A stretch of DNA of 64,000 nucleotides from Eutreptiella sp. 'Long Island Sound 2002' (GCA_964036045.1 OZ038379.1:15996001-16060000); one strand, 5' to 3'. Shown: positions 15,276 to 60,430, counted from the first letter of the stretch. Notes: generated by a model not told the origin, from the letters alone. Translations and numbers: made by a program.

Positions 15276-17996
15276 TCATTTGCGCCGCGGTCGTTTCGCA
15301 GTCGGCTGGCTCCCCTTGGCCGGGGCAGGCCGCTTCCGTGCGGACTTCGCACGGGGCTGTACAGAGCCTTTTCTCCTCGGGGTCGACGCAGGCTTTTGGA
15401 GCGCCGGCCGCGACGGTGCAGAGGTCCCCCGCCGTTTGGCAGGCGAGGACACCGCATCCGCCCCTCTTTTTCTTACTGGCCTTCCCCTTTCCCGAGCAGT
15501 GGCTGCGGACTTGTGTGTACGCTGCGAGCCCTGTCCCGAAGGAGGCCTTCCTCTTGGCTTTGGAGGGTCCACTGCGGCGGACCTGCCCCGGGGCTTCGGT
15601 GGCACCTTCGAGGCAGAGCTGTCTTTTGGCCTTGACGACTGCTTTGAGGCACTGCCTTTGGGCAACGGACGGTCCACTGAGGTGGACCTGCCTCTCGGCT
15701 TCGGCGGCGACTTTACGGCAGAGCTGTTGTCTCTTGGCCTTGACGGCTGCTTCGAGGTTCTGCCTCTTGGCTTCGGAGGCGCGTTTGATCTGGGCGTTGG
15801 AGGCTCCTGGGAGCTGGCCCTACCTCTGGGCTTCGCAGGCACCGATGGGGCGCAGAACAACGAGACGGCGCCGACCCAGTGGTCAGGGTCCACGGCAGTG
15901 CCTCTCCACTGGTCAGCGTCCAGTGACAGATCCGCTGCGGAGCTCGGCAGCGACATCCGGCGAAGTGTCATCCCAAGTGCGGTACTGGGCTGGGTTGCCG
16001 TGGAGGAGCCCGAGCCCCTGCGGCGGCTTCGGCCCATTGCTGTCTCTGGGGAGGCATCGGGAGCAGCATGGCAATCATCTACGGCCGCCGCGGAACCGGA
16101 ATTTTTCAGCCTCGTCCGGGCGTCTGGCGTCGTGCTTTCCTCATTCTGGGTTTCCCGCGCACCGCTAGGCACACTGGTGGACCTGCAGGCATCGTTTTCC
16201 CGTGATGGGCTGGCTGTGGCGTCGCTAGAGGCACATGGGGCGACAGCATCCCCGGCGACCATGTCGACGTCGGATGTGCTGCTAACAGTGTCTTTGATAC
16301 TCGGGCTTCGAGCGGCGTCCTCCTTCCCCGGGCTCCGGATGGCGCCCTTGCACGTGGCATCGATGCTCACGTTAGGCAATGAAGGGGCGTCACTGGTGCT
16401 GCTGCCCGCCGTCAGCCCGGAAGCACACGAGCCCTTGGCCCCGGTGCTGGTGGCACTAACCTCGTCGTTTCGGGTTTCGAACGTCATCAGTCCGAAAATG
16501 CCACTGCTGCTACTGCTGGACTCGTCGCTTGTTGGACTAACGTCGTTGCCACAGGGGGTGCCGATGCCGCCACTACCACTACTGGCCGGACTGATGCCGG
16601 CGCTCGGGTGGCGAGCTATCGTTGTGCTGCTGGTGCGCTTGACAAGCGCGTGCCGTGGCTGCCCAGGGCGGCCCTTCAACAGCGGAGACTTCGCCGCAAT
16701 CAGCACTGGTACTGGTAGCGGCGGTGAATCTTGCACTGGCTCTGTCGGTGCACTACTGCAACGCCGAACGAGGTCAGACAATGAGGCGGTGGTGGAAGGG
16801 GGGTGTTCCTCGGCGTCGGAGTCGCTTTCTTCAACGTCGTCAACGATAGCGCTCTCGTTAAGGGCAACGTTCCCGTTGCCGTACTCCTCCTCCTCGCCCG
16901 TGAGTGGGACATTGCCGCGGGCCGCTTGCTGCGTACTATCCATAGCCTCATCATCCCAATTGCGATCATCCTCGGTAAGGAGACCGTCAGGTGACTCATC
17001 AACATGGCACCCGTTGGCCGTTGCGAGGCTCGTCGCGGCATCCGGTCGGTCTATGGCGACGATGACCACGGTAATATCATCGTGATACAACCTCCGATTC
17101 CCCGGGTTGATCCTACGCAATTGCTCGTACGACATATTTAACGCTACCGCGATCTTTTCCCGCAACACATAATCAATAAGTTGCTGTGCGGCTCCACTAA
17201 CGTTGCCCGTGCGATCAACATATGCCCGAACCACGTCAACCACTTCTTGGTTGCTCATCCAATTGTACAAACCGTCGGAGGCAAGCAATACAAATTTGTC
17301 GCTTTCCGGGTCCAAACGCCGGGTCTTAATAACCGGTGTGCAAGTGATGTACGGCACATAGCGGCTATATGGCAGGAACGATTTCTCCTTCCTTTTGAGG
17401 TACGCGTCACCCATGGCACGCGTGACCATAAGGCTTCCCGCAACGCGCAATGGCCCACCAGATAGCGGCGACCGACGGATGGGGTTCTTGTCTGCCGTGC
17501 GTTGCCTCACCAACATGCACTCCTTTTCATTTTGGCAATCTTGGTCCACGCTTAGCGGCTTTGCGCACCACTCGTCGTCTGCACTCGTGCACAGGATTGC
17601 TCTACTATCCCCGATGTTCGCGACGAATACCCACTTCTTGTAGAAGCAAGCTACTAGTGCACAAGATCCTGTAGTCGACTTCACCTGCGGACGATCCAAG
17701 AATTTATTGTCCATCGAAGAGAAACACGACCGGATCGCCTCCTTAATGTAATTCCTCTCGTCTTCCTCAGTTTCGAAATTGAGAGGTCTCGATGATAACT
17801 CGAGCAAGTTGCTAGCCAACTGGTGAGACATGAAGTGGGAGCAATCCCTACCACCATGGCCATCAAATACTCCATAGAATTTGCTCACATGGGTGTCTAC
17901 GTGGACGTCGAGTGCCACAAATGTGTCCTCGTTGATCACATTGGCTTGGTAAGTGCTTATGGAATGGACAAGGGCCGGGGTACCGCCATGAAACAT
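15276..17996 (-). CDS. Intronless PP2C/PPM phosphatase (906 aa; PDP/plant clade-D-like catalytic domain) with a long low-complexity tail bearing AT-hook-like repeats
   Basis: Motifs YQANVINED, FYGVFDGHGG, VANIGDSRA, RVAGSLMVTRAMGDAYLK, FVLLASDGL and HDDITV are all present. A probable trans-splice acceptor (ccttgttcgttccaag|) lies about 25 nt upstream of the ATG. Ends in TGA. Confidence 0.9.
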   Translation of the reverse strand: MFHGGTPALVHSISTYQANVINEDTFVALDVHVDTHVSKFYGVFDGHGGRDCSHFMSHQLASNLLELSSRPLNFETEEDERNYIKEAIRSCFSSMDNKFLDRPQVKSTTGSCALVACFYKKWVFVANIGDSRAILCTSADDEWCAKPLSVDQDCQNEKECMLVRQRTADKNPIRRSPLSGGPLRVAGSLMVTRAMGDAYLKRKEKSFLPYSRYVPYITCTPVIKTRRLDPESDKFVLLASDGLYNWMSNQEVVDVVRAYVDRTGNVSGAAQQLIDYVLREKIAVALNMSYEQLRRINPGNRRLYHDDITVVIVAIDRPDAATSLATANGCHVDESPDGLLTEDDRNWDDEAMDSTQQAARGNVPLTGEEEEYGNGNVALNESAIVDDVEESDSDAEEHPPSTTASLSDLVRRCSSAPTEPVQDSPPLPVPVLIAAKSPLLKGRPGQPRHALVKRTSSTTIARHPSAGISPASSGSGGIGTPCGNDVSPTSDESSSSSSGIFGLMTFETRNDEVSATSTGAKGSCASGLTAGSSTSDAPSLPNVSIDATCKGAIRSPGKEDAARSPSIKDTVSSTSDVDMVAGDAVAPCASSDATASPSRENDACRSTSVPSGARETQNEESTTPDARTRLKNSGSAAAVDDCHAAPDASPETAMGRSRRRGSGSSTATQPSTALGMTLRRMSLPSSAADLSLDADQWRGTAVDPDHWVGAVSLFCAPSVPAKPRGRASSQEPPTPRSNAPPKPRGRTSKQPSRPRDNSSAVKSPPKPRGRSTSVDRPLPKGSASKQSSRPKDSSASKVPPKPRGRSAAVDPPKPRGRPPSGQGSQRTHKSAATARERGRPVRKRGADAVSSPAKRRGTSAPSRPALQKPASTPRRKGSVQPRAKSARKRPAPAKGSQPTAKRPRRK

Positions 17997-19054: not shown

Positions 19055-19126
19055 AGGTCCTACCCGGATCCGAACCGGGGTTACAGGAATCAGAATCCTG
19101 GGTGCTAACCACTACACTATAGAACC
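19055..19126 (-). tRNA. tRNA-Gln (anticodon CTG)
   Basis: Revcomp GGTTCTATAGTGTAGTGGTTAGCACCCAGGATTCTGATTCCTGTAACCCCGGTTCGGATCCGGGTAGGACCT (72 nt) folds into a cloverleaf: acceptor GGTTCTA/TAGGACC, anticodon stem CAGGA/TCCTG around TTCTGAT, T-stem CCCGG/CCGGG. Confidence 0.95.
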
Positions 19127-26364: not shown

Positions 26365-29329
26365 GGGTATACATGGTCAGCAGGGAACGGCAACAGAAGT
26401 AGGCCCACCACTCTTCATCAATCATGCAGTTGTTACCTGCTTCCTTTCTTTGCTTGGCAGTACATTTGTTGAGTTACTTGCACTGCTATGGAATATACCA
26501 GCCACCTTGCCATTGTCATTGTCATTGTCATTGTCCAAGGAAGCAAAGGCATTAAGGCATGTTGTGTCACTGCCCTGTGAAATGGCCAGCTGCCTGCGTT
26601 CATGTCAATGTCACCTCAAAAATGGCCATCAGTGCCCCCACATCCTGCGCTCTATGCCCCCTGCCTGCCAAGCCAGGCTCGTTGGGCCTGCCGAGCTCGG
26701 CATGCCCCCTTGTCTTCTGATGGGACGTTGCATGTTTGTGCTTACCATGGCTCGAAGAGAATCCTTTGTAATTGCCTGCATGCGGGTTCCGTTGGATTGG
26801 TTCTCCCGCAGATTTGGTGATGGTGGCGGCTTGTTGGGAGTGGGCCATTCATGCAAAAGGACAGAAGTACCCAATGCTGAAAACGGCACGAACGGCTCAA
26901 AGCGGAAACAGCCAACACCATGGGAACGGAAACAGCACAACCAGCAAGGAAATACAACAACGAGCGCAGGAACATCAACCCCAGTACCACACTCGACAGC
27001 AGGCTGTTGGCATTGTGCGCAAAGGGTTTTCTGCCTCGCATAGGCCGACATGTACGATCACTGTGGTCCATGGCGTTTGCTATGAAACCGCTTGCTTGCT
27101 TCGGGGACTGGACTCCAGCTATCAGCGGTGAGCGCAGACGAAAAGGAATGGTTGTTTTCTGTCTCCGTTTCGCGGGCACATTGAGCGCAGCAGATTCCTG
27201 TCGCCATTTATTTGTAAGTGTATCTGTTTCCTTCAACAGAATCTCAGCGTCGCATTCTTGAATACAGAGCTGAACATGATAATAAATTGCTTTCTTATGA
27301 TGCTGATAAGCGGCTGTGAGTTTGTTTTTTGTCTGATGCCAGACTGTCTTTTGCACTCGTTCAGGAAATTGCCCATTGTAGTGCACACGCAACCACTGAA
27401 TGGCCTAAAGGGCGTGTGGCAGCTCAGCTGTTCTCGACTGTGCACATATTGAGACCGAGCCGATACAACACCCTGTCAATGCACGAATCCTGCAGGGCGA
27501 AGGCTCTCCTGTTTTACATTGTGCATGTGATCCCAGAATGTCTTAGCACTTTTGAAAAAGGGTCGGTCCAGAAACCCTTCAGAAGGGAAGTGCAGACAGT
27601 CAGAAAAAAAAGGCAGTCGTTCAGCAAAACACGCCACAATTGGCACGCAGCCATTTTAGCGATTTCCCTGTTTGCCACATTTGCTGTTGGAGACGGCCCA
27701 ACTGTCGCTTTTTCTGCAAAGCATCCCGGGCAGGTTGCGAATTTTTTTTCGTCCTTCAAATTTCTTGTTGACAAACAGCTTCGAGTGAAGTGCAAGTGCT
27801 AATGTATTCGATTCGTACTGGCGTGTATCTAGGATGCCCACGATCTTTTTGCGGAAGCAGATGTGTATAGCACTGGAGTCGGCCTGGAATGCCACGCACA
27901 TCATGTGTGTCAACCCTTGTACACAACTATTGTCTGCAGTTAGTATAGCGCAGCGGGGTAACGAAAGTTCTGCCACCGGGCCCCCAGCACCCCCCCCCCC
28001 CCCTGTCCTGCTTCCCCTCCTCCCTCCTCCCCTCCTTAGCCTTTTATAATTTAAAGGCGGGGGTACATCACTACACAAGGCTTTCCTCCAGCTTCCTGCA
28101 CTTTCATCAGCAGTAGCACAGGTGACTGACTACCGCTACCACCTTTCTTATGTATAAGACAGCATCATACCAATAAATTGGGGACCACTGCCATATCTGG
28201 ATTCTGTGCTTCTACAATTTTTCGCCAGCAGCAATGGGCGAATCCCACCTTACAGACTTAGCAACCACATGCACAGGATCCAACATGGCATGTTCCTGGT
28301 ATGATCATTTATAAAAGTCACCAGCTACGATGGTCTCATGACCGTCCCCTTGGATGTATCACATGGGTCCAAATGGCATGGCAGGCCAGTTCGGCACTGC
28401 CACTTTTCTGAAGTTGTCACATCTGATGTTCTTAAGTTGTCACATCTGATATTTGTTTTGATGCCTGTGTGGACATTTGGGAGGTAACCTGAAGTTCGGC
28501 ACACATCAGCTGTGCTGTGCTGGATGCAAAGCACAGGAAAGAAGAACCAATTAGGCAAACCTTTGTTGCTGTTCAGAAACAACATTGCCTGGGTTGTCAT
28601 TGAAAGTGATGATTTGTGGGAGAACATTTCAGTGAATCAACACAGATTGTTTGTGTACTGACACTTTGCCATTTCTGGTTTCCGAAATTGAATTACATGC
28701 TGTAGCACATTCCAGGGAGAGGGTTTTTGGAGACAAAGGCCACAGGTTTGCTACATACAAGATGATGGGCTTTTGGAGACAAAGGCCACAGGTTTGCTAC
28801 ATGCAAGATGATGGGCTGGTTCTGCAAATTGCTCCTCAACTGGCTAATGCAGAAACTGCGCTATGCAAGAAGCAACTGACACTGTATTATAATTGGTTGC
28901 AACTCCACCTGTGCCCAACCCACACTTGCGCTTCTTCTGTGTGCCAGAAGCATGTGGCATGTCTCAAATTTAGTGGTTGAAATCATGGTGTGCAAGAGGC
29001 AAAGGGCAACAAGCAAGAGCTCTGTGGAGAACCATCTTGCTGCAAAATACTATTAATACTATCTTTGTTAAAAAAGCAACAAGGTAAAAGGAGGCCACAA
29101 CCACAAACGAAGCCACAAAGGGGGCGCACCGCCAGGGTTCTAGTTCACCTTAGCCGACACTGTGTATCCTCTACACGCCATAGGTGATCAGGTGCAGGCA
29201 CCGATCTGCCCCACTAACACAGGTGTATCACAAACATGTACATACAAGATGGGATTGTACTGCATGTGAGTGGCGCCACCGGTCAGCCCCAATTACCGGA
29301 TCAACACTACACTGGAACTAAGGCTGAAA

Positions 29330-32340: not shown

Positions 32341-33099
32341 CCAAAAGGTGTGTTCAGTGTGCACACAGTGCTGACCCTGACACTTTCATTGGACTGATGT
32401 AGTCTGGCATGGGGTCAGGACCATGCTGGATATCTAAAAAACCTGACATCACGACCCGAGGTGCTTTTCATGCAGACAAAAACAGGGTGTTCTTTGGGAA
32501 AGCACTTCCGAAACGTGTGCAAACAGCTCTCTCTAAGACGAGCCTCCAATTTTCCATTGATCCCTCCTCGGAATTTCGTTCAGATTTCACGAATCTCCAA
32601 AATCAGGCTCCCCGTCCTATCACTTCTTTTATATTGCGCAAAGTTCAGAATGGACACCTGATTTTTTTCTGGTTTGGGGTATGGCATTAATGTTACCGCT
32701 GTCAATTTTGGTGCAGGTGCCTGTTGTGTGTCCAGTTATTAAAAATGACATCGGTTCATCACCTGCACCTTTGCATGCCCGAAACCATTCTTGGGACTGT
32801 GACCAGCGTCTGTTGGTCCAACAGCTTGTTGGACGGACATGCGAAGAGGAAACGACGAGTTTTTGTATGGGAATCCGTGATGGAACCGCCTGCCACTGTG
32901 CCACTGTGCGCCCTTGCTTAGCATTGTCACTCATTTTCAGCAAATGGTGCTGCATTCCAAGGGTGTTTGCAGACAGGTCAGGTAATGTCTGTCCCACAAG
33001 GCATTTGCCCTCAATACTCCTACTTCGGCCTGGGGAAATCCGCACGTTGTACACATGATAGTACTCGTAATCGCCTCTCCAATACTTTCTTTGTGCTCC

Positions 33100-33117
33100 A
33101 GTGTCGATTTTTCTTCG
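33100..33117 (+). promoter_or_regulatory. Relict (genomically fixed, decayed) spliced-leader 3' part; probable current trans-splice acceptor region
   Basis: AGTGTCGATTTTTCTTCG versus SL AGTGTCTATTTTTTTTCG is 16/18 identical and ends 13 nt before the ATG at 33131. atactttct (33082-33090) resembles the SL 5' end ACACTTTCT. Confidence 0.7.
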
Positions 33118-33130
33118 CCTTTGATCTACA

Positions 33131-34639
33131 ATGGCCAGCAACACATGTCATAGGATGTATTACACGGATCTTGAGGCAGCCACCTCTGCACCAGCTGTTA
33201 TGCCCTCTCCTCAGCACTGGTCCATCTCCCAGATTGCTGTGGCCCTCTCCGCTGTGTGTGTGGTAGGGACTGCTGCCTTTACCTTCTTTGGTTCTACATC
33301 ATCTTCAACCTCCCTCTTTACAACCCCTCCAACAGCTGCGACTACAACAGTATCCACACCAGCTGCTGCTGCACGCCTCAGGGCTCCTCCTCTGCATGCA
33401 GCTGGCCGTGGGGGGTCCATGCGTGTGGCTGGGGCTGTAGCATCCGCTGGCTTCGCAGCACCGGCTCACGCTATGGTGCATGATGATTGGGTTGCCCAAG
33501 CCTCGGCACCAGCCCCCCTTTTGGGCTTTGCTGCCACTGCAGCTGTGGCAGCTCTCGGCCTGGCCCTGTACTCAGCATTTCGTACACAGCGGCCTCAGCC
33601 TCAGCTTGCATTCGCAGGCAGCAGCACCCCGGGGCGCCCTCATACTAACTCCATGGAACCCCAGATCCCACTTGTTGCGTTGAAAGCTGAGACCACACCC
33701 CTTGAGCCGATCACTTCCGTCGAGTCACCCCCCACCGACTCCCCGACAACCCCCCTCGGTGTGGAAGTGGGCAAGTATTCCTTACAGGGTAGCAGCCGCG
33801 CGCAGAACGAGGACCGCTACGACTTAGGGGACTGCGCCAACACCCAGTTTTTGGCAGTTTTTGACGGCCACGGAGGGAATGCTGTGTCAACATGGCTGCA
33901 GAAAGAGCTGCGGCAGCGTATTGAATCGACCTTTGAAATCACCCGCCCTGACAAGTCTCTGGATCGGTGCTTCCGCCGCGCAGACAAGTTCATTTGTCAG
34001 CCGCAAAAAGGATTTCTGGGCATGGCGATGGAGAGAGGCATTGGGGGCGCCAAATGTGGATCCACTGCTGCTCTTGCCATGCTGTACGAGCAGGATGGGC
34101 AACGCAAGTTGTGCTGTGCTCACGTTGGGGACGCGCGTGTGTTGATCATCACCAAGAAAGGAGTTGATCAGTTGACCGAGGACCATGTTCCAGATCTTGA
34201 GGATGAGCGAAACCGAATCGAGTCCAAGAATCCCAATCCGTTGAACCCAATGGTCAGGTTTGAGGGCGAGACCTACCGAGTGCGGGGGATGCTGGCCCTC
34301 TCGCGTGCCTTCGGAGACGCCTACTACAAGGGCTTTTTGCAGTTCGAGGGTGTGAGTTACAAGAACACCAGGCTGGATTCCGGACACGGGGTCATTGCGG
34401 AGCCCGATGTTGAGAACATTCTCCTTGAGCCCACTGATGAGTACATCTTGGTCTGTTCGGATGGTTTGTTTGCCAATCCTGAGCGCGGAGGCGGTGGAGG
34501 GCTGAACAATGAGGACGTTGGCAAGTTGATTCACGATAATATGGACAAATCGACGGACGAGCTAGCAGAAATGCTCTGCAGGACGGCCCAAGACACAGGC
34601 AGCACTGACGACATTACAGTCTTGCTGGCGAAGCTGTAA
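33131..34639 (+). CDS. Intronless plastid-targeted PP2C/PPM phosphatase (502 aa) with a euglenid class I-type presequence
   Basis: The N-terminus has hydrophobic segment 1 (IAVALSAVCVVGTAAFTFFG), a Ser/Thr/Ala-rich transit region, hydrophobic segment 2 (LLGFAATAAVAALGLALYSAF) and then basic residues. Catalytic motifs: QNEDR, AVFDGHGG, AHVGDAR, LALSRAFGD, ILVCSDGL, TDDITV. Ends in TAA. Confidence 0.92.
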   Translation: MASNTCHRMYYTDLEAATSAPAVMPSPQHWSISQIAVALSAVCVVGTAAFTFFGSTSSSTSLFTTPPTAATTTVSTPAAAARLRAPPLHAAGRGGSMRVAGAVASAGFAAPAHAMVHDDWVAQASAPAPLLGFAATAAVAALGLALYSAFRTQRPQPQLAFAGSSTPGRPHTNSMEPQIPLVALKAETTPLEPITSVESPPTDSPTTPLGVEVGKYSLQGSSRAQNEDRYDLGDCANTQFLAVFDGHGGNAVSTWLQKELRQRIESTFEITRPDKSLDRCFRRADKFICQPQKGFLGMAMERGIGGAKCGSTAALAMLYEQDGQRKLCCAHVGDARVLIITKKGVDQLTEDHVPDLEDERNRIESKNPNPLNPMVRFEGETYRVRGMLALSRAFGDAYYKGFLQFEGVSYKNTRLDSGHGVIAEPDVENILLEPTDEYILVCSDGLFANPERGGGGGLNNEDVGKLIHDNMDKSTDELAEMLCRTAQDTGSTDDITVLLAKL

Positions 34640-36284
34640 AGTTCCTTCAGGTTCTTAGGAGCAGGCAATTGTAATGTTGTACTGCCGAATGGTGTGAGTG
34701 TAGATTGAGGTGCTGGATGCACTCTGCCGGGGGTGGAGATCTAGCTGGCATCGCTGCCGAAATGCACACCCAATCCCAGCAGTATCCACGCCGCCGTGGC
34801 ATGATTCGGATGCACCAGATGATATTTTTTTTTTCTGTCAAGCCTCTTCCTGGGGTTGGTGATACCTAAGCGCGTGGCACTAAATTCCCACTCCAGTCGA
34901 GCCTGGAGACTAGGTTGAAATAGTGACTTTACAGCTGTTTCTCTCGTTCCTCCGAAAGATGTCCTGCACACTGCATGCGTTGATGTTGTTGCTTTCGGCA
35001 TGCAGATTGTCTGGAACGATAATATTATCGCAGTGCAGTGTGCCACTGTGCTCCCACACATGTGCGGGACCACTGTGGACCGATTTTGGATGTCTGTGGA
35101 CATGTCCTAGTCCTACGCTGCACCATTTGCATTTGTGACGGACCACTGCCTGTCTAAACACCCGGCCGGACCGCACTTGTTCATATCGGTAACTCCATTT
35201 TCTGCAGCGCTCTCAGACAAAGACGTGCCGGCTACGGTGGTGGGGACGCCATGAAAAGGGGCTTGCATGCTCATATAATTGGCCGGACACCCGCCTGAAC
35301 ACAGTCCTTTTCAGCCTCCCCCACAGTCGTTCAGTGCGGAGATTGCAAGTCTTAGGACCCGGCCCGTGCTTAAGCAAGGGGGAGAGGGCACGGGCGGCAG
35401 CAGCAACGTATTCACAGCAGAAGGACGTGACCTGTGGTGCACCGCTGAGCAGAATTTAGTAGCGATACAAATCACACACGTCCATTCTTTCACCTTCCGA
35501 CCACCAAAAGAGCAGTGTGTCTGAGAGTAATGATTTGTGTGAAATATGTCGTGAGGCTATACATATCCAAACACAGTTTAAGTGTGGAGGCAACCGTCCT
35601 CTGAGATGCCGTGGGTATCCTCCTCGTGACACTTGTATTTACTTAGCAGGCTTCAACTCACTACACAATCTACGAATATTTGTTGGAGCCATCTTTGGAG
35701 CGGCAGCCCACCAAAGCACCTGAGCAGTCTGGTGCTATTCAGCATTTTTGTCTTGTCAACCTTGTGTATCATTAGCGAACCAAAGAGTTTCTTTTTTTTT
35801 TTTTTCGAAAGTGGACGGTGGGAGACCCCGTCCAGTGCTACTGATTTGCCTTGTATGACGCGACGATATGTATGATATTGTGGTCAACAGCTGCCCACTG
35901 CAAGAACCGCAGCCTACCCTTCCATCCTGTAGTGATGCTTGATTTTCATTGTCGGTGCCTCCAACAAACATGAGAGGTCTGAGGGGCAAGTACTGCACTG
36001 GCGCAGATTTGCACGGTGTCACCACGCACTTACACAGGGGGCAGCATACTTCTGGCCATCCAGAGATGCCATGTGGTGTCGTACTGTGGGGGCATATTGC
36101 GTGCTGTGCGCGCACTGTGCACAAAGTCTGTACAGGACCAGACCCAAGCTCCATAGTAGTGCCTAGTACCAGTAACAATGAGTCTTGTTGTGCATTTGTA
36201 TGAGTTCCCTGCATGCCTAGCCCTCATTTCTAGTGCATTTGTGTGTGTTGTTGTGCATGTCACTCAAAAAGGGTACCCATTTTG

Positions 36285-36790
36285 GTGTGTCGGGCGTAAG
36301 TCACTTATTTTTTTTTTGGTGTAAGTTGCTTATTTTTTTTTTAGGCGTAAGTCGAGTGTGGGGAAAAAAAACTTCAAAATGTATGGCATGTGACATACAC
36401 TTTTTTTGTGACACGACCTATCCCCAGAAAAAGAATTACGTGACTTGCGCCTTTTTTTTTTTTTTTTTTGAAAAAAAGTGAGTTACCCTTTTTTTTTAAA
36501 CACAAAAGTGAGTTACGCTTTTTTTGATACACGACCTACTGCAAAAAAAAGATAGCGAATTACGTTTTTTTTTAAACACGCGAGTTACACCTTTTTTGTA
36601 ACGCGACCTCCACTTTCTTTGATACACGACCTGCAGCAAAAAAAGCAAGTTACGCCCTCTAAAAAAAAAAAGCGAGTTACACTTTTTTTGTTACGCCACC
36701 TACACTTTTTTTTGATACACGACAAACTGCAAAAAAAGTTTGAGATTTATGCTTTTTAAAACAACCGTGATGTTCCCCCCAAAAACAAAA
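36285..36790. repeat. Degenerate short-period repeat (gttacgc/acgcgac cores separated by A/T runs); a related inverted block lies at 39730-39885
   Basis: The revcomp of about 36310-36370 (ttttccccacactcgacttacgcc...gcaacttacaccaaaaaaaa) matches about 39735-39795 (ttttccccactcgcgac...gcaacttacaccaaaaaaaa). Confidence 0.6.
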
Positions 36791-40597: not shown

Positions 40598-41399
40598 CAG
40601 GGTAGCCAAAATCCCCCATTTCTCCCTGTAATATGCGCGCTGTGCGCGCGTTATGCGTGCGCTATGCACGAACACCCCCCTCCCCTCAGCCCCATCCAAC
40701 TGACAGGCAAAGTGCAGGATGCCCATCTTTGGACAAGCCCGCTGCTACCTGCATCTTGGCATCGTCTGCTGGATCGCTCTTGCCTACGACCTCTTTGGTT
40801 CCATGGGCAAGGTTTAAACGCCAAGTTTCTGGATGAACACTCGGGATTTCCAGTCACGTAGGGGCACCATGAGCAGCCAGCGTACACAGGCCTGGGTCCG
40901 GTCGCCATTTTGCATGCTACTGACGATGCCCTTACTCCCGAGGTGTTCTTGCAGTCTTCAAGCCACTTCAATGGGGTTTTGGCAATTAGCTATCAAACAC
41001 CCTTGAAAATGTATACAACAACTTGAGATTGCACTGGACACATGGTGTGCAGCATGACTTATCAATGTGGGCTTTGTGCCCCGAAGAAAAAGACAGCTAG
41101 AAACATGACAAGAAAAAGACAGCTAGAAACATGACAAAACCGCACCATGAGCATGGTGTGTCACAATTTCACACTGCAGTGCAGTTGACACCCCCCTAGA
41201 AAGACCCCAAGACAGTAGGGGTTGCACAGCCACTTTTGAATACGTTCGTTGAACCTTCCGGTGCTACTGAGGTGAATTGGCCCATTGGAGGGGTTTGGAA
41301 AACTGAGCGCTTTGGAATCCGAAATATGCGGCACATGATTACAAGGTCATCATCGCTGTAGAGATGTGGGGTAATTTTGGATAGACTACCTCAACACAT

Positions 41400-46712: not shown

Positions 46713-48263
46713 TACGGTGCAAGTGCAATGGGACTCACATGATGAGACTCTAAACAAAGATGGCGCAAAACTCGGGAACTGACGCCAATAGCCCTATGTT
46801 CAGTGCTCGGAGGCACAGGCAAGGTGATTTCTTTGATTTGGTTGATTGAGGTTGGGCCATGATGGGGTGCATGTCTTTGTGGTTTTGACGGCCCAACAAT
46901 ACTTATACAATGATGTACATGGGTGGTATAGGGTACGGATTGCGCAATTTTTTGCTCATTTGTGGCATTGGGATTTGGAAAGGAACATCCCGCGTAGTGG
47001 TCCAAATGAATTGCAGCAATCAGTTCATATGTTGTTGCATTTTACACAATTTTGTATCTAGAGGTGGGTTCATTATCCCCTTCATGTGTATGTGTGGAAG
47101 GCTACTGATGCAAGCAACCGAGCAGCCACACAAGATGACAGATTGGAGGTTGTGCATTGTGCTGCCAACAGCACACCACACTTTGTGGTGTGCAGCATGA
47201 AACTCATTCCACAGAGAACTGTTTATTAGGCACAACACATGTCTTGTGTGTTGAGGAAATGGAATTCACAGATTTGGTATTATGTTGTCTGCTTTGTAGG
47301 GAAGGGGTTGGGGTTGATTCTAGTCTGCTTGGAGAGCTTCTCTAGGGGAGGGCAAAACTGGGGCCAAAGTCGGCATACTTGGCACAAAAGTTGCGCACCC
47401 AGTACGCACCGCGCAACCACTCCCTCACCGTTACCAAACAGTGAGTGCTCTGAGGGTGTTGGAGGAGGAGATGCATTCTGTTGCACCTTGTCCACGTGGA
47501 ATGCGCCCAGGAGATGCCTCAACCTGCTCCAGTGACGGTTCCTGCCATGTTTGGGATAGGTCTCAGAAAGATGGCCACTGTTAATACCAGGGCCACTCAA
47601 GAACAGGTGAGGGAAGTTTGCACCCATGGTGTGCACAGCATCCATTTGCAAACTCGGTTGCTGTCAAATTTTGTCATTGAACCACCTTGTAGTGTTGGTT
47701 AATCACCATCTGCTGTCTGCATACCAATGCCGCCCCACTTCCCCAGCAAACCTACTCTACTTTCGCCCCCCCCCCCCCCCCCCACCCCCGTGTTTGTCGC
47801 TGGCTTTGTTGAACAAAGCCAGTCTTCCAGAGGGTCCGTGCACACTGCCAATGACATATTTCTCTCAACCTGGTTCCCTTTTTTTCAAGAAACTTGCCTC
47901 AGCGCTTGTTGGAGCCTCCTGGAAAGTGTCCACCACTGGCTGATACGCGCGGCATCCTTACTGAGAGTACACCTGAACCCATCCATTTCAGAATTCAGCC
48001 AGGGGCAGGACCTGTTGGTGCCTCCATTCACTCACTTTTTGCCCAAACAGCACTGGAGCTCGTGTCAGGCTGCAACACAGCTCAGTGGAATGGGACATAT
48101 GATGACCCCCAATGTGATGCATGATGATTCCAATGTGAAGGATAAGGGGACGCATTCTGCGTCCCGTGTGATGACCCGCCCCCCCTGGCTACGCTCAACG
48201 GGACGCGTGACGATGACCCACAACGCCTCCCCCTCTCGTGGCGCCTTTCAGAGTGTTGCACAG

Positions 48264-51200
48264 ATGGGGACCATCTCCTCAGCGGAGAATGCCGAGGACA
48301 TCCGCATGGGGGTCCTCAACGATTTGCACGACGTGCCATATCTGGCGGGCGCTGACGACAAAGTCCTGCTCGACCATTTCGGACCCTTGCACATCGAAAG
48401 CGTCAGTCTGGAGTCGGCCAGCAACCGCAAGGCGCATCACACCGACATGTACGACGACAAAACCCTGATTCTGCGCCGCGGAGCATCGTTCGTTATCACG
48501 GTCATGTTCAGCGAGCCCTATCCCCTTCATCCGAGCGAGACCAAGTGTACAGTGCTGCTCCGCGACGAGCGGGACAACGAGCTGCGCCTTGCGCCGGAGA
48601 AGTCGGATCGACAAGACCTGTCGAAAGAAAGAGGGTGGGTGCAAGTGGTCGACTTTGCCGAGGGGCTGCTGCTCCTGGTGGCCAACCTGCCGGTCCGTGT
48701 GCCCACCCCTCATCTGATCCCCCCCCTCCCCCACATGGCCCTGACTCCTGACTCTGGTGAAATCCAACGCCTAACCGCTTGGCCCAGGAGTGCCAGCACA
48801 AGCAAGGTGGCTAGGAAGAGGATAGCAGCCTTTGGGCGCCCAAACTGTTCTGTACGATTGAAACACTCAGTTGTTGACAAAATAAAGGCCAATACTGGTG
48901 CAGGCAATCGTATGGTAGACCCTGGTGTATCATAGAGTCGATCTCAATGGTACTGCCGAACATTGCTGCATATGCATACCAGGACGTGCATGTGTGGAGC
49001 GCTTTGTGACCTGTTTGCGGCCCCCACGTGGCTTGCATCACTCACTGCGGGTTTGTACCGTCTGGTACAAGGGCGTCCTCGACTGGAGTTTGGATCCGGA
49101 AGGGAACGCAACCCCGTTGGACCGGCCCTTTGCCGCGGTACCCATTCCCATTTGTTACTTTCTTTCCTCGAAATGGTCGCAAGTCCGGTGGAACTGCACT
49201 TCAGATTTCGAAGGGTCCTGTTGAAATGTCGCAGGACGATACGAGCACACCGGCGTTCCCAATAGCAGAGGGCACGCGGGGCTGTGATTGATCATCTGAA
49301 GAACTTTGGGTTGGTTGCCGCAGTCCTTGTGGTCCGGAATGCAAGAGGATGCGTGAGCCGGTTGTAGTGGGAGAGTGGGGCCGGTCATGCCTGTGAGGAG
49401 TTGTTTGTGCCTGTGATGGCATTGTGCTTGAGACTGTTGTAGTCATCTACTTTTTGGACTGCAAGGGGGGCCAGACGCTCTCCCCCCCCCCCCCCGTCGA
49501 ACCGCTTGAACGGGCGTTGTGAAGGATCGAGCGCCGCTTGCCTTTGGGTTGCGCGTAGGCATGGCCCTGTCTAAGCACGACCTGTCTGTCTCAGCACATA
49601 ATTTGTCTACACACATGACTTGTCTCAGCACATGATGATTCCTGGGGGCGCCTATGGTGCCTTTCTGGAATCAGCGGGGATGTCTAATACAGAACCCCTT
49701 GCAGTTTGTTGAGGGTGTGATGCGCGGGACGACGAGCATCGTCAGATTGAGGCCACGCGCATAACTCCCTGTCTGACCGCCGTTTCCCCTGCCGTCGGCC
49801 GTACTTGCGCTTGCGCTTGTTCATGAGTGGGACTTGTGTCCCCTCCCCACCCCCCCACCTTTGTAGAAATGTTGTGTGTGGTTTTGTGTCATGTTCTCTG
49901 CAACAACATGATGGCATCCGCAAATATCCCCCGGCATTCAAGTGTTCGGGCCGCTGACTGAGCCCTCATCGAAACCGCCTGACACAAGGTCACCGAGGCA
50001 AGCTCGTGTGCTTTCCCCCAGGCCCCCATCAGGAGACGCGAGTCCAGTCAGCACAGAGGCAAAGCGAGACTCAATGACCGACGTGCAGCAGAAAACACTG
50101 CACCGCCAAAGCATCGGCCGTCGACAGCCTGCGCCCCCACAAAACACACCCAAGTGCATTACACCGGCAAGCCGACCCCCACCTCCATCCCCCATTTAGT
50201 GCCATGCAGTGAAGACGCCACGGCGCTGGGCGGTGTCGCCTGGTGTTCGACAGCGAGGTGGATGAGCTACTTCCTCACTGAACGTGCCTACCGGACCTCG
50301 GGGTAAGCCCTTGAGGAGGTACGGTAAGGTATGCAAGACCGCTGGTGATGCTTCACAATGATTCGTGGCCACCTCATCCCCCTCCCCCCCCGCCGGCAGA
50401 GGCTGCCCTTGTGAGCAGAGGGACAGCCGTCCCACTCTCACCTCAAAATCCGCTTCCCCACCGTCTGTGGACCAACAATGTGTACAACTTCCTCTCCGAA
50501 ACTTGAGCATTAGCGCAGACGGATGACCCCCCCCCCCCCTCGTACTCCCCCCCTCGGTTCGCTGACTTCCGAGTCCACATCCGAATCTTGAAATCAGGTG
50601 GACGCTGCCATCGGGCGTTACAAAGTTGAGGTCAGCATCCGCTTTCGGCAACGCAAGGTCACGAAGACCCTGGACGAGCCTCTGACGATCCTCTTCAACC
50701 CCTGGAGCCCCGACGACGAAGTGTACTTGGGCTCGCAGGAGGAGCTGCGCGAGTACGTGCTGCTCGAGGACGGCATTGTGTACCGCAACGGGGGCCGCGC
50801 GTCGGTGGACGTGTCGCCGAAGGCGTGGAACTACGACCAGTTCGACGCCGTGTGCTTTGCCGCCGCGCTGCAGCTCGTGGGGCGTCTCCCGAGGCACGAG
50901 CGGCACTCCGCGGTCCTGGTCGCGCGGCGGTTCGCCGCGCTCGCGAACGCGCAGGACGACCGCGGGGTGCTCGTGGGCAACTGGTCCGGCAACTACTCCG
51001 ACGGCGCGGCGCCGTGGCAGTGGAACGGCAGCCGCGAGATCCTGAAGGCGTACCTCCGGAGCGGCGAGCCCGTCAAGTACGGGCAGTGCTGGGTCTTCTC
51101 TGGGCTGCTGGTGACGCTGATGCGGGCGCTGGGGGTCCCCGCGCGGTCCGTCACGAACTACGGGTCGGCGCACGACACGCACAGCAACCGCAGCATCGAG

Positions 51201-52242
51201 TTCTACTACGACGGCAACACGCGCCTGGGCCACATCTCCGACAGCATCTGGAACTTCCACGTGTGGAACGAGGTCTGGATGCGGAGGGGGGACCTCCCGC
51301 CGGGCCGCGACGGGTGGCAGGCGATCGACGCGACGCCGCAGGAGGTGAGCGGGGGGAAGTACCAGATGGGCCCGGCGTCGGTCGTCTCCGTGCAGAAGGG
51401 GGAGGCCACGGCGTACGACGCGGAGTTCGTGATCGCGGAGGTCAACGGCGACGTGCGGCAGTACCGGCGGGAGCCGGGGGCGCGGTGGCACTTGTTCGGG
51501 GTGGACTCCACGCGGGTCGGGCGGCTGGTGGTCACGAAGGCCGTGGGGCGGCGGGAGGCGCGGGACATCACCGGCAACTACAAACACGCGGAGGGGTCCG
51601 TGTCGGAGCGGGTGCAGGCCCTGCGCGCCAACGGGGGGCCGGAGGAGCTGGAGTTCGCGGTGGAGTTCGGGGGCCGCGCTGGGCCGGCCCTACGCCGTGC
51701 AGGTGGCGGCGCCGGCGGAGGGCGCCGCGCCGCGGACGGTCCACACGCAGATCAACTTCTTCTCGCGGTCGTACCACGGCCGCCACCGGAAGCTGCTGAA
51801 GACGGAGCAGAGCACGCAGCTCCCCCCGTTCCGCCTGCGGCTGGAGCTGCGGCCGGAGGAGTACCAGGGGTACCTGAGGGACGCGGGCTTCTGGTTCCAG
51901 TGCGAAGTGCACGCGATGGTCCAGGAGACGCAGCAGATCTTCACCCGCGACGAGGCCTTCGAGCTGGAGCTGCGGCCGGCGCCGACGGTCGCGCTCGCGT
52001 CGCCGATGGCGGTCGGGACGGAGGCGCGCGGGACGTTCACGTTCGTGAACCCGCTGGGGGTCGCGCTGTCGCAGGGGCGGCTGGTGGTCGAGTCGACGGT
52101 GCGGCTCATGGCGCGGCTGGACGTGGAGGCGCCCGACGTGGCCCCGCACGGCGACGCGGTGATCCCGTTCATCGTCAACTGCCAGTTGGACTACGATTGC
52201 ATTACGGATATCCGCGGCTTCGCCGAGGTTGAGGTCCGGTGA
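48264..52242 (+). CDS. Animal-type four-domain protein-glutamine gamma-glutamyltransferase (transglutaminase): join(48264..48692,50598..52242), with a single-base frameshift in the G-run at 51669-51673
   Basis: N-domain NRKAHHTDMYDDKTLILRRGASF. A phase-0 GT-AG intron (48693-50597) joins ANLP|VDAAIGRY. The catalytic triad is intact: YGQCWVFSG (C), WNFHVWNE (H), WQAIDATPQE (D). The C-terminal barrels (SRSYHG, FVNPLGVAL, ITDIRGFAEVEV) continue in another frame to TGA at 52240-52242. Confidence 0.9.
48955..49030 (+). repeat. Short interspersed repeat (other copies at about 52335-52405 and 61735-61810)
   Basis: Shared core gccgaac(a/g)ttgctgcat(a/c)tg(c/t)atacca(g/c)gacgtgcatgtgtggagcgctttgtgacctg; the 61.7-kb copy is more diverged. 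Confidence 0.7.
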
Positions 52243-55741: not shown

Positions 55742-58700
55742 TCACTTTCTGAGTGTCTATTTTTTTTCGGGTCCTTTTCCCTAAACCAGAGGCAGCCACA
55801 ACAGCACTCAACAACGACTACAAGTGCTACGCTGCGCCTGGGACCGAACCACGGATAGCTTTCATTGTCCGCAACGCTGTGGTCCCCCACATACTCGAAA
55901 CGTTATACTCACCCAATGGTTTGGCAGGGGCCATCAGGATACAGCTCCCAAACAGCCCCCGCCGCACCATTGCGTGTGTGTACTCCAAATTCAACCAACA
56001 GGACAAACAAGAGGTAGACCTATTTCTGCAGTCCCTGAGACCATACGACATCATTATGGGGGACTACAACGATGACATTTGGTCACCCAACCCGACACGC
56101 CCGTGGCAGGAAGACCTGGCCAGCGGAGTGTTCTTGGACCCTTTGCACGCTAGCAGCCAACCCCCGGACCCCCGGCAATACTATACCCGCATCCCTAGGC
56201 ATGGACGCCCACGTCGACTAGATGCCATCTTGATTAGGCAACAAATACCGAACATACCCTGGACCTACTATGACACCATACAAATGCCCATATCGGATCA
56301 TGCTTTGGTCCTGCTTGGGGTCCGATGGAGGATAGGGGTCCCCGACCCACCACGCAGAAAACCACAGCCCACAGTCGCGAAGTGGTATACAAAACAATTT
56401 CAACGGTTTACTAACACCATATCCACACTACCCATAACAAACAACGACCCACCCCTACACACGGCACGACGGATCCTGTCTGCTATAGCGCACGCGGCGC
56501 GGCCACGACGACCCACGCGCGCAAAGACAGCGACCACCGCAAGCTGGTCGGAAACCACGGACCCCAAAACACGGTTACGAGAGTACGGGGAAATACAAGA
56601 GCAACACATACGGAGACAAATCGGCAAACTGCGCCGAGCGGCAGTGCACAAATTGGGCTATTTTTATAAAATGGTCAAGAGATGGCGCACTGGACTCATA
56701 GCCTAGGACACACCGCAGCCCCCAATAGGAGGAACACAGTACGTACTCAACCACTTTGCGGGCGACCCAACATACGACGAAGACGCGTGCCGGCAACTCA
56801 TACGGAAACATGTACGGCACCGCACGTGGAACACAACGACCCCCACATACGAGGAGTACTTGCGGTGCCTTCGGGCACCAAAGAACAAATCTGCCGGACC
56901 TGACGGTGTCCCCCCACACCTGCTCCGGCACCTACCGGACCACGTGCAGCGGCAACTATACCAGGCAATCGTTGCAGTCTGGAACGGACAGCACATCCCA
57001 ATGGCTTGGCTGCAGTCCAGGGTAGTGCTCATCTATAAAAAGAAGGATCCCCAGGACCCACGAAACTACCGGCCAATCTACGTATCCACGGCCATATATA
57101 GTATACTCACACGCCTCCTCCTGACGCGTATATCGGGAGCCTTGACCCCGGGACTATTGGACATACAACACGGCGCCACACAGGGCCGAAACACCACAAC
57201 GTTAGCCACGAAACTATTAAACGACCTGCACGTTGAGGACGGGTACGTGGCCCTACTTGATGTGGCCAAAGCTTTTCCTTCAGTCCCCCGACCCATGCTG
57301 ACTGGGATCGTCAAGGAGGCAGGGGCACCAGAAAACATCATACGGATGTTGGGGGAAATATACCAGCATACACCGGCCGTACTAACCCTACACGGAAAGG
57401 ACCTACCCATACGCCCCACCAGGGGTATGAAGGAGGGGTGCCCCCTCTCCCCAACACTATTCCTCCTTTACTACGACATACTATTACGTGAAACCATGGA
57501 ACGATGCCCGGGAGCCCGACTGTACGTGTTCGTTGACGACATAGCTGTGCGTGCGCCCACGAAGGAAGCATTGCTGCACACCCTGGATACCCTCCACGAC
57601 GTGGCCCACACAATGGGGTTACGCTTCAACAAGGACAAAATTGAAGTGTGCCACTGGGCTAAGGACTACGACCTAACGCCCATCACGTGGCGGCATCAGC
57701 TCATCCCCGTGCGGCCACCTATAATGACTTACCTGGGGCATGTGCTTGCCCACCCCACACAAGAAGACACAGCATGGGACATGGTCACTACACAGCTACA
57801 CCACGACGTAGCGGCATACAGGGCCCTGCCGCTCAACGCCTACGAAAAGGTGGCTATCATCAACGCCGTCCTTATCCCCCGTTGGACGTACAGGGGACTG
57901 TTCCTCGGAAATAGGACACGAATGGCGCACTGGGACGACATACTACTGCAGTTCATCAGGGATACACCCGGGGTAGAACAACAAATGAACAAACACCGGC
58001 TGACTACCAACCTCAGTCACGGGGGACTTGGCCTACGCCAGCTGTGGTGGTCCTACATCACCCGGTGGGTCACAATTGGCCAACAGGAACTGCAGCGCAC
58101 CGGCCCTACACAACAACTCACCGCAACCCAATATAAATACATAGACGCCGTCCGAGCCCTAGGGGGCACGGTGGGTCAGCGTATATCCCAACCCCGACAA
58201 CACCGACCCTTGTCCGCGGGACTCTACGACCCGGAGAGCTCAGAGGAGGACCAGGAGACGCATGCAGGGAAGACACGGCCAGCTACCAACCGCTTAGACT
58301 ACAGCTGGATAAACCCTCCAGAGGAGCCAACCCCTGAGGAAACCCATGAGGTTTGTCAGGCACTCCCCCACCAGCAAAAACTCCACGGCATCACCATACA
58401 CTACACAGGAGAACCCACCACCACCCGGTGGTACACAGACGGGTCAAAACGACACGGACGAGCGGGAGGGGGCATCTACAACGGAACATACCGTGCGGCC
58501 TTCCGGGTGCACGGGCCACAACAGGTTCATCGGGCCGAAACGATCGCTTGCGCCTTAGCTTCAGAGCTGGCCAAGCCAGGAGACGACATTATACTAGACA
58601 ACCAGAGTGTGGTGAAGGCCACACCTATAAAACGCAAAGGAGTGGTCAAGGACCAGGACTACCGCGACATAGGGTACCTCAACTCCACCACGAAACGACT

Positions 58701-60430
58701 GACGATCCGATGGACACCAGGGCACCGCAATCTAGAACAAGCCACCACGTATAAAGACTACCAGGACATACAGGGGAACAACCACTCTGACGTCCTCGCC
58801 AATATGGGCGACAACCTGCCCATGGATTCCCAACAACCACAACCCCATGATATTGTCATCACAGGACAGATCATGCCCACGCCTGCCAAGGCATGGATCA
58901 TGCAAGTGCGTAGACAAAAACAAACACCAGATGTACACTGGGTGAGCTGGCTCCCCATGAAGCACTACTGACGGAACGCGTGGACACCCTGGCTGTGGGG
59001 GCAAGTGCGTTGGTGGGGAATGGGCGCCCCCTGGGAACGGACACCCCGCCTCTGCTCCCAGTGTGGCCACCAACACGGAGCATCGGTGCAGTCAAAACTG
59101 GCTTGCTGTCCTGCCTGGAGCGACTTCTGAGACCTGTGGCGCAAGAGCTGGACTGATTGGGCCCCATACACGCACCAATGGCTGCAAGCGGCCGACAACC
59201 AAGAACTATGGCTCTGTGTCAGGCTGCTCATACCACTATCCCTCGTCGACGCCATACCCACTGCGGAACGACACAAACTGCGAACGGAGGTGGGCCTGTT
59301 CCAGTTTCGCATGATACAGTCCGTCCAAACACTAAGACGGAAGTACGCCGACCCAACACCACAACAACCACCGTCGCCCCTGTGGCTCACCAAATACATG
59401 GCACAGGCACTTCCGCCGCGAGAAACGCCCCGAAACCTACGGAACCAAGTCGGGGCGCCCACGTGGTGCGGCGCGAAACGCAAACGTAAGGCCGAGGTCG
59501 CAACGGCTGACCCAATCGATCCCGGCCAATGGTTACAAGATGCACGCAACGTGGGCGATAGTGAGGCAGTGGCATGGTTCGTCGCACGAGCCACTAACAC
59601 AGGGGCAGACGACCACATAAAGAAACGTCAGCGCCTCAACGTTGACACACAGCGGTGGGAACAGTACAAGACGACCACAGACAGGCTGGCAAATGAACAC
59701 GCTCAGCAAGCACGGGACATATACCACAAAGCACACATGGAGGCGATGGCGAGACAACACCTGCACACCCTACACATGGGCTACACCAACGCACTGACGG
59801 CTAAAATAGACTACCACAGGCTTGTCATAAAACTAGTCGACCAACAGAGACAAACACAACGACTGCACGACACACATGCACACCTATACCAAATACGTAG
59901 GCAATGGTACGAACAAGCGAAGGACGACACAAGGATGTGGTACACTGACTCAAAACTGCTACTGATGGTCAACGACCGATACTGGAGGCCGAGCGCAGGC
60001 ACTGCCAAGCTACTTGACCTGCACCATCAACAAGCGACCTACATGTGGCAGCAGCAGACACACCTGACTGCCATGGCACAGTACTACCAAGACGCCTGCA
60101 AACACAAGACAACACAATACTGGCAAACAACCCGACCAGCCCGACAGACGATATACCTGATACGGAAGCGGCCGCGGGAGCACTGGGACCCCACCTTGTG
60201 GGAAGTCCCGTTACAACCGCTACCGAAACGCCGCAAAACGCACTGGGACCCAAATGAGTGGGAAGTACCACTGACATGACTACACCAACCTCAATGGGAA
60301 ACCATGGGGGCACAGTCACGAGCTGCAGCCCGTATGCATACCCTGGCTTCGCCGAAATCTGTATCTTACTTCGAACTTGGTCCACTGTGGCCCCTGGCAC
60401 TTATGAACTGGCCTTTTTGATAAAAAAAAA
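55742..60430 (+). mobile_element. Non-LTR retrotransposon (APE endonuclease - RT - RNase H - Cys-rich finger - long C-terminal extension), SL-capped, poly(A)-tailed, with a 17-bp TSD
   Basis: One reading frame runs 55771-60279 (about 1500 codons), broken only by in-frame stops at 56704, 58969 and 59128. APE: TIACVY, IIMGDYN, RLDAIL, ISDHALV. RT: KSAGPDGV, NYRPI, LLDVAKAFPSV, GMKEGCPLSP, FVDD, YLGH. RNase H: WYTDGS, RAET, ILDNQS, WTPGH, GNNHSDVLA. A-run at 60422-60430. TSD AATATTTGGAATTTAGC at 55725-55741 and 60431-60447. Confidence 0.95.
55743..55769 (+). other. Intact euglenid spliced-leader exon sequence at the 5' end of a retroposed element
   Basis: 55744-55769 reads ACTTTCTGAGTGTCTATTTTTTTTCG, the 26-nt SL of Euglena as I recall it. 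The preceding C extends the match to the longer ACAC-starting form recalled for Eutreptiella, with T in place of its first A. It is followed by GGTCC, not by the GT of an SL-RNA intron. Confidence 0.95.

Follow-up and report, generated by a model that had tools for sequence, protein, structure and literature searches.

A degenerate spliced leader encoded before an intronless PP2C gene of the euglenid Eutreptiella points to probable descent from a reverse-transcribed mRNA

We analysed a stretch of 64,000 nucleotides (nt) of genomic DNA from Eutreptiella sp. 'Long Island Sound 2002' (GCA_964036045.1, OZ038379.1:15996001-16060000), referred to here as the window. All coordinates are positions in this window, on the plus strand unless stated otherwise. 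The subject is a PP2C gene and a degenerate copy of the spliced leader (SL) that stands immediately before it. An earlier note, made from the sequence alone, had proposed that this gene is a candidate functional retrogene, with the old SL now providing its splice acceptor.

The gene is an intact open reading frame (ORF) of 502 codons at 33131-34639 (+), composed of a presequence (residues 1 to about 214) and a PP2C domain (residues about 215 to 502). The Pfam PP2C profile (PF00481, gathering cut-off 20.3 bits) matches residues 237-495 at 6.9e-36. The columns that are invariant in seven homologues are all kept, including the DGHGG, GDAR, SDG and STDD motifs, and solved structures of PPM1K and of plant PP2Cs match at about 1e-13.

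By hydropathy, one hydrophobic segment of the N-terminal extension is centred at residues 39-47 and another at residues 133-141. Ser plus Thr make up 21% of the intervening stretch and Ala 30%, and two of its residues are acidic. Euglenid class I presequences consist of a signal-peptide-like segment, a hydroxylated and Ala-rich transit region, and a second hydrophobic anchor 60 +/- 8 residues on (PMC6242988). In our protein the spacing is wider than this rule, at about 75-85 residues; the homologues are built alike, with a shorter spacing. The named best matches outside euglenid-type sequences are mostly from green algae, with around 45-53% identity. From these features the protein can reasonably be called a plastid PP2C. 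Of the intact plastid PP2C claimed in the earlier note, the intact PP2C stands by its profile match, while plastid targeting is suggested by a double-hydrophobic presequence with a spacing that is off the rule.

The RNA evidence consists of assembled contigs. Four sets of RNA contigs are from Logan, two of them from runs of a single organism-labelled study and two from estuary metatranscriptomes, and three transcript contigs that encode the protein are from JGI (L003-L005). The strand, the exact 5' ends, any minor acceptors and the poly(A) site are beyond what such contigs resolve. Positions 12-3047 of L003 are identical to 33101-36136 of the window (100% identity, 3,036 nt, 0 gaps), and L004 and L005 are likewise gap-free up to 36110 and 36055. 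Because the transcript contigs run gap-free against the genome, there is no intron in the 5' untranslated region (UTR), in the ORF or in at least 1.5 kb downstream. The ORF had been presented as intronless, and this is confirmed over the whole of 33101-36136. The 3' region at 34640-36136 (+) is identical to the RNA contigs, with no intron, and the Logan contigs extend 444-593 nt past 35500.

The SL of Euglena gracilis is ACTTTCTGAGTGTCTATTTTTTTTCG (PMC6242988). The SL of the organism studied here is of the Euglena type, has 26 nt, and occurs as an exact full copy at 55744-55769 of the same window. Upstream of the PP2C gene, from about 33075, the genome reads CTCTCCAAT ACTTTCT TTGTGCTCC AG TGTCGATTTTTCTTCG CCTTTGATCTACA ATG. 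The sequence AGTGTCGATTTTTCTTCG at 33100-33117 agrees with the 3' 18-mer of the SL (bases 9-26) at 16 of 18 positions; the seven non-T letters are all identical, and both mismatches fall on T positions. Its first two letters, the AG at 33100-33101 (+), correspond to SL bases 9-10 and are the trans-splice acceptor in use. The remaining 16 nt, TGTCGATTTTTCTTCG at 33102-33117 (+), match SL bases 11-26 at 14 positions and form a 5'-truncated relict SL that is retained in the mature mRNA. The relict ends at the last base of the SL and is followed by CC (CCTTTG and the ORF), with no GT donor. Between this end and the ATG lies the original 5' UTR, the 13 nt of CCTTTGATCTACA at 33118-33130 (+).

On the other side of the acceptor, ACTTTCT at 33084-33090 (+) is identical to SL bases 1-7. 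Being 5' of the acceptor, it is missing from the mRNA and outside the coverage of the RNA contigs. It is probably the 5' end of a genome-encoded old SL. A pyrimidine-rich stretch of 9 nt, TTGTGCTCC at 33091-33099 (+), takes the place of SL base 8 (a single G) and runs into CAG. These 9 nt and the flank 5' of them serve as the polypyrimidine tract for the acceptor. The stretch may have originated by an insertion or deletion (indel) inside the relict, or it may be host flank. For 33100-33117, the earlier note had given 16 matching positions and an end 13 nt 5' of the ATG, and we found the same values. The likeness to the SL 5' end that it had seen at 33082-33090 holds for ACTTTCT, whose membership in the relict is likely, though unproven.

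The match to the SL is beyond chance. A search of both strands of the 64 kb with the SL 18-mer, at three or fewer mismatches, gave two matches, the site at 33100 and the full SL at 55744-55769, with 0.07 expected; two or more matches were obtained in 0 of 100 dinucleotide shuffles. At two or fewer mismatches, the SL 16-mer finds only the relict site and the true SL, and plain T runs join at three. For a fixed place directly after the acceptor, the probability of a 16-mer with two or fewer mismatches is 2e-7 under the composition of the window, and 2e-5 under 45% T. The ACTTTCT 7-mer is found by chance within 30 nt upstream in 0.2-1% of cases, and the joint probability of the 16-mer plus ACTTTCT within 30 nt upstream is 4e-10 to 2e-7 (analytic). 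If SL-like matches of this quality had been as frequent in shuffled sequence, the earlier proposal would have lost its ground; within the 64-kb window they are not.

The transcripts show that splicing takes place inside the old leader. Contigs of all four Logan sets match the genome over 33101-35500 with no gaps or other letters, and in all four the loose letters (A)TTTTTTTTC precede 33101. The three JGI contigs read ...TTTTTTTTCG and then TGTCGATT..., which corresponds to A-T(8-9)-CG, TGTCGATTTTTCTTCG, CCTTTGATCTACA and ATG. The genome 5' of 33101 reads ...GTGCTCCA, unlike the T run of the mRNA, which therefore derives from a fresh SL. Since the G at 33101 belongs both to the SL, as its last base, and to the genomic AG, the splice joint is at 33101|33102. 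Runs recorded or guessed as RNA contain 0.80 of the sampled words of 32500-35500, which is the fraction from 33101 on; the runs of 2024, of unstated kind and presumed to be DNA, contain 0.98-1.00. The RNA contigs are without the 600 nt of genomic flank upstream, and the 2024 runs contain this flank. A scan of metagenome contigs for the genomic acceptor-spanning 29-mer and for the mRNA-joint 32-mer gave no match to either.

The mature mRNA is thus a fresh SL followed by a 16-nt relict, truncated at the SL-internal AG. The earlier note had predicted an mRNA composed of SL, TGTCGATTTTTCTTCG, CCTTTGATCTACA and ATG, and exactly this order is seen in seven RNA contigs; its proposed acceptor, the AG at 33100-33101, is borne out by the Logan and the JGI contigs alike. 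The T run of the fresh SL has 8 letters in some contigs and 9 in others (L003 and L004 versus L005, and the Logan loose ends), reflecting either variants among SL-RNA genes or homopolymer noise in the assemblies.

Three homologues share the presequence and the N-terminus with our protein: P0002 and P0003, with 49-55% identity, and P0004, with 60% over the domain. Together with the PP2C of the window they form one clade with 98/97 support. In the tree, a Pavlova-type group is the neighbour of this euglenid clade, and most of the named sequences around them are from green algae. The PP2C of the window has the longest branch of its euglenid clade (0.79, against 0.04-0.5) and carries extra Pro/Thr/Ser-rich residues at about 185-210, between presequence and domain. 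Both features may be due to faster evolution after relocation, or to a lineage effect.

The homologues are represented by transcript contigs from other euglenid samples (L001, L002 and L006). In L001 and L002, the 3' end of the SL is followed by 14 nt and the ATG; in L006, 17 nt of the SL are followed by 7 nt and the ATG. Each of these mRNAs carries a single SL and no relict. When the sequences are aligned at the ATG, the real SL of the homologues (14, 14 and 7 nt before it) coincides with the relict (13 nt before it). Having the SL joints of the homologues at the end of the relict is independent support for an mRNA-derived origin. On the simplest reading of the aligned sequences, the ancestral mRNA would have been an SL, about 13 nt and the ORF, and the end of the relict would mark the former splice joint.

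The window also contains a second case of an SL written into DNA. The exact 26-nt SL at 55744-55769 (+) leads directly into an ORF at 55753-56706 with an endonuclease/exonuclease/phosphatase domain, which matches profile positions 66-225 only; the SL is not followed by GT. A reverse-transcriptase ORF follows at 56860-58971, and the whole element spans 55744-60280 (+). It is an SL-capped copy of a long interspersed nuclear element (LINE), and its presence shows that SL-bearing RNAs get reverse-transcribed into this genome and that the enzymes for this are available.

Taken together, we consider it likely that an SL-capped mRNA of a plastid-targeted PP2C was reverse-transcribed and gave rise to the gene. 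An origin from complementary DNA (cDNA), as the earlier note had it, is supported by the SL match, the RNA contigs, a gene that is intronless while two of its neighbours look split, the SL joints of the homologues and the SL-capped LINE. Since the relict ends at the last base of the SL and continues with CC, not GT, the source would be a spliced mRNA and not an SL-RNA gene. The copy is expressed (RNA contigs), intact and the sole close copy found, a word-based protein search having given no protein between 60% and 100% identity; being the only one, it is taken to be the working gene.

The proposed course of events would start from an ancestral mRNA of SL, UTR of about 13 nt and ORF, a form still seen in the mRNAs of the homologues. 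Entry of its cDNA into the genome would have written the SL into DNA before the UTR and produced a gene free of introns. On transcription, the AG at SL bases 9-10, lying after a pyrimidine-rich tract, is used as acceptor; the outcome, a fresh SL plus a 16-nt remnant of the old one in the mature mRNA, is seen in the RNA contigs. The cDNA may have arrived by ectopic retroposition, for example by LINE machinery, with a later indel in the SL and loss of the parent and of the 3' hallmarks.

Several findings weigh against this reading. The RNA support comes from assembled contigs, not from raw reads, and the homologues are known as mRNAs only, not as genes. The old SL is interrupted, with 9 nt in place of base 8, so that either an indel is needed or ACTTTCT is coincidental. 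No A-rich remnant was found in 34640-36500, which includes the candidate 3' ends at 35944-36136, the true 3' end not being fixed; these ends have no A run near them, and further on there is only an A8 at 36364-36371. A listing of direct repeats in 32900-36600 pairs no repeat between the 5' boundary and the 3' region. Finally, no intron-bearing parent was recovered in the word-based protein search. As possible poly(A) remnants we considered the T runs at 34823-34834 and 35792-35805, and rejected them as lying on the wrong strand for a tail of a plus-strand gene.

Part of this pattern would also be expected if the gene had never moved. In that case a cDNA of its own SL-capped mRNA would have served as template for repair or recombination at the native locus, which we regard as rather unlikely. 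Microhomology of the native CAG acceptor with the AG of SL bases 9-10 would have produced the 5' joint. Only TGTCTATTTTTTTTCG would have been inserted at the old trans-splice site, with the introns erased and the native acceptor and polypyrimidine tract still used, and ACTTTCT would be host flank that matches by chance. Such a replacement would fit with a poly(A) remnant, a flanking direct repeat and a second copy all being not found, with a good pyrimidine tract and CAG exactly at the internal AG of the relict, and with a UTR after the relict as long as that of the homologues; moreover, the 9-nt break in the SL would need no special indel. However, ACTTTCT stands in the right order 9 nt upstream, which has only a 0.2-1% probability by chance, the SL-capped LINE shows that ectopic insertion of SL-cDNA occurs in this genome, and a branch that is the longest of its clade (0.79) is common for relocated retrocopies. 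Within a cDNA origin, ectopic retroposition is somewhat more likely than replacement in place, modestly favoured because SL bases 1-7 are present.

The remaining explanations do without a cDNA. It is very improbable that a T-rich 5' UTR after an ordinary acceptor merely resembles the T-rich SL. The 3' half of the SL is indeed T at 11 of 16 positions, the surroundings of acceptors are pyrimidine-rich, and at three mismatches the 16-mer also matches plain T runs at 27736 and 35792. Yet the seven non-T letters match without exception, and a limit of two mismatches leaves only the relict site and the true SL. Even at 45% T, the probability for a fixed place does not exceed 2e-5, or 2e-7 when ACTTTCT is included, and the match ends where the homologues have their SL joint. 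Equally hard to credit is the transfer, at the DNA level, of part of an SL-RNA gene or pseudogene to a place upstream of the PP2C gene. Organisms with SL trans-splicing typically have many copies of their SL-RNA genes, and SL-like scraps are seen elsewhere in the window, at 27594-27606 (-) and 27733-27751 (+); but the match stops at the last base of the SL and continues into CC and the UTR of the gene, with no GT donor or SL-RNA intron, and the boundary equals the splice joint of the homologues. Rfam, run on the window, gave only a tRNA and no match to an SL-RNA family. An artefact is the least credible of all, whether by contamination of the assembly with cDNA or by a double SL from a tandem-SL donor RNA, as proposed for some dinoflagellate transcripts (PMC6616646). 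In its favour, the 2024 runs, which cover the stretch in full, may be what the assembly was made from and are hence not independent. Against contamination, the genome continues into 600 nt upstream that are lacking in the RNA contigs and present in the 2024 runs, and it reads ACTTTCT, 9 nt and the relict, not a fresh SL and the relict, and is thus no copy of the present mRNA. A tandem-SL donor is no explanation here, since the genome itself carries the relict in cis with the ORF.

Recycling of mRNAs with relict SLs was reportedly described for dinoflagellates by Slamovits and Keeling in 2008 (Curr Biol 18:R550, as cited in PMC12582326 and PMC9311404). The process is also discussed in PMC6616646. 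Our locus resembles the dinoflagellate cases in the genome-encoded SL before the gene, in an mRNA made of a fresh SL and a relict cut after the SL-internal AG, and in the intronless copy. It differs in belonging to a euglenid (Discoba) with an unrelated 26-nt SL, in having a single relict instead of stacks, in the break of 9 nt within the SL, and in that no parent or tandem family is seen.

In Paulinella micropora, SLs found within 100 bp 5' of gene starts have been read as reverse-transcribed SL-mRNA, with six candidates verified manually (PMC9311404). The likeness is an SL in the genome near the gene start, and some of the Paulinella candidates are single-exon. At the Eutreptiella locus, by contrast, both the re-splicing at the internal AG and the position of the ancestral joint are documented. 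In flatworms, loci of SL-tagged retrotransposons with partial or full SLs have been attributed to integration of trans-spliced transcripts (PMC12582326). The flatworm loci, like the LINE of our window, are copies of mobile elements, whereas the PP2C is a host gene and still a working copy. Classical processed retrogenes, mediated by LINEs in mammals, are intron-free expressed copies that usually have a poly(A) tract and target-site duplications. The PP2C is likewise an intron-free, expressed and intact copy of a spliced mRNA, but a poly(A) tract and target-site duplications were sought here and not found, and its 5' SL mark is without counterpart in organisms lacking trans-splicing.

In the literature searched, which left most subscription journals outside its coverage, we found no report of a relict SL, a retrogene or mRNA recycling in euglenids. 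Within that literature, relict SLs are established only for dinoflagellates, Paulinella providing candidates and flatworms SL-tagged transposon copies.

Relict SLs are the clearest molecular fossil of an mRNA written back into the genome. For one locus, the evidence is unusually complete: the mark in DNA is joined by RNA evidence of re-splicing within the old leader, and the position of the ancestral joint is fixed by outgroup mRNAs. This combination indicates that euglenids, a lineage unrelated to dinoflagellates and with an unrelated SL, recycle mRNAs by the same process. It bears on intron loss in euglenids, on the remodelling of genes acquired from the green-algal plastid donor, and on how a gene without its own promoter can be expressed, being rescued by trans-splicing. 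The relict SL also offers a simple genome-wide marker with which retrocopies could be counted and dated in the very large genomes of euglenids.

More tentatively, and with some doubt on our part, the AG at SL bases 9-10 might be a built-in re-entry site that makes recycling a routine way of gene replacement and intron loss in euglenids, and that here replaced the only plastid-type PP2C copy. If so, any SL-capped cDNA landing in transcribed DNA would bring its own acceptor and be immediately expressible.

Further SL-like sequences were found in the window. At 35785-35807 (+), GAGTTTC followed by T14 and CG corresponds to SL bases 8-26 with two mismatches and a T run longer by 4. The PP2C RNA contigs extend across this site, and for the 26 T runs of the window with at least 8 letters we estimate an expectation of about 0.002 such matches. 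The site is either another relict SL, truncated at its 5' end and lacking an ORF behind it, or the A-tail of a retro-insert on the minus strand. Of the two scraps mentioned above, the one at 27733-27751 (+), ...GAATTTTTTTTCG, has the last 11 SL bases exact and 15 of 19 overall, and that at 27594-27606 (-), TTTCTGACTGTCT, agrees with SL bases 3-15 at 12 of 13; neither has an obvious ORF behind it.

A second PP2C is located at 15276-17996 (-), as an uninterrupted ORF of 906 codons (Pfam 8e-42) in which the profile match begins at position 34; it may have an upstream exon. The 200 nt before its ATG contain no SL-like sequence. It was examined as a possible parent of the intronless gene and rejected, being 25% identical and of another subfamily. 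The tRNA gene found with Rfam is at 19055-19126 (-), with 58.6 bits.

Beyond the 3' region of the PP2C gene, two of the transcript contigs (L003, positions 3048-3166; L004, positions 3022-3140) join its 3' end, at 36136 and 36110 respectively, through 10 Ns to 40668-40776, 4.5 kb downstream. GC-rich repeats of the GCTGTGCGCGC type are present on both sides of the join, at 36096-36115 and 40634-40667. The link is probably a repeat-driven scaffold join, the alternatives being an intron or a convergent transcript. Just past the ends of the transcript contigs, 36290-36600 contains short repeat units, T and A runs and the inverted 12-mers GGCGTAAGTCAC and GTGACTTGCGCC; the cluster, possibly a small repeat element, probably caused the assembly breaks.

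As for the other genes of the window, the ORF of the SRP68 neighbour (1854-2936, +) covers only profile positions 246-565, the C-terminal two thirds. The transglutaminase neighbour is divided into two or more ORF blocks, with blocks at 47727-48935 and 50598-52232 (+). Judged by this ORF structure, both neighbours appear to have introns.

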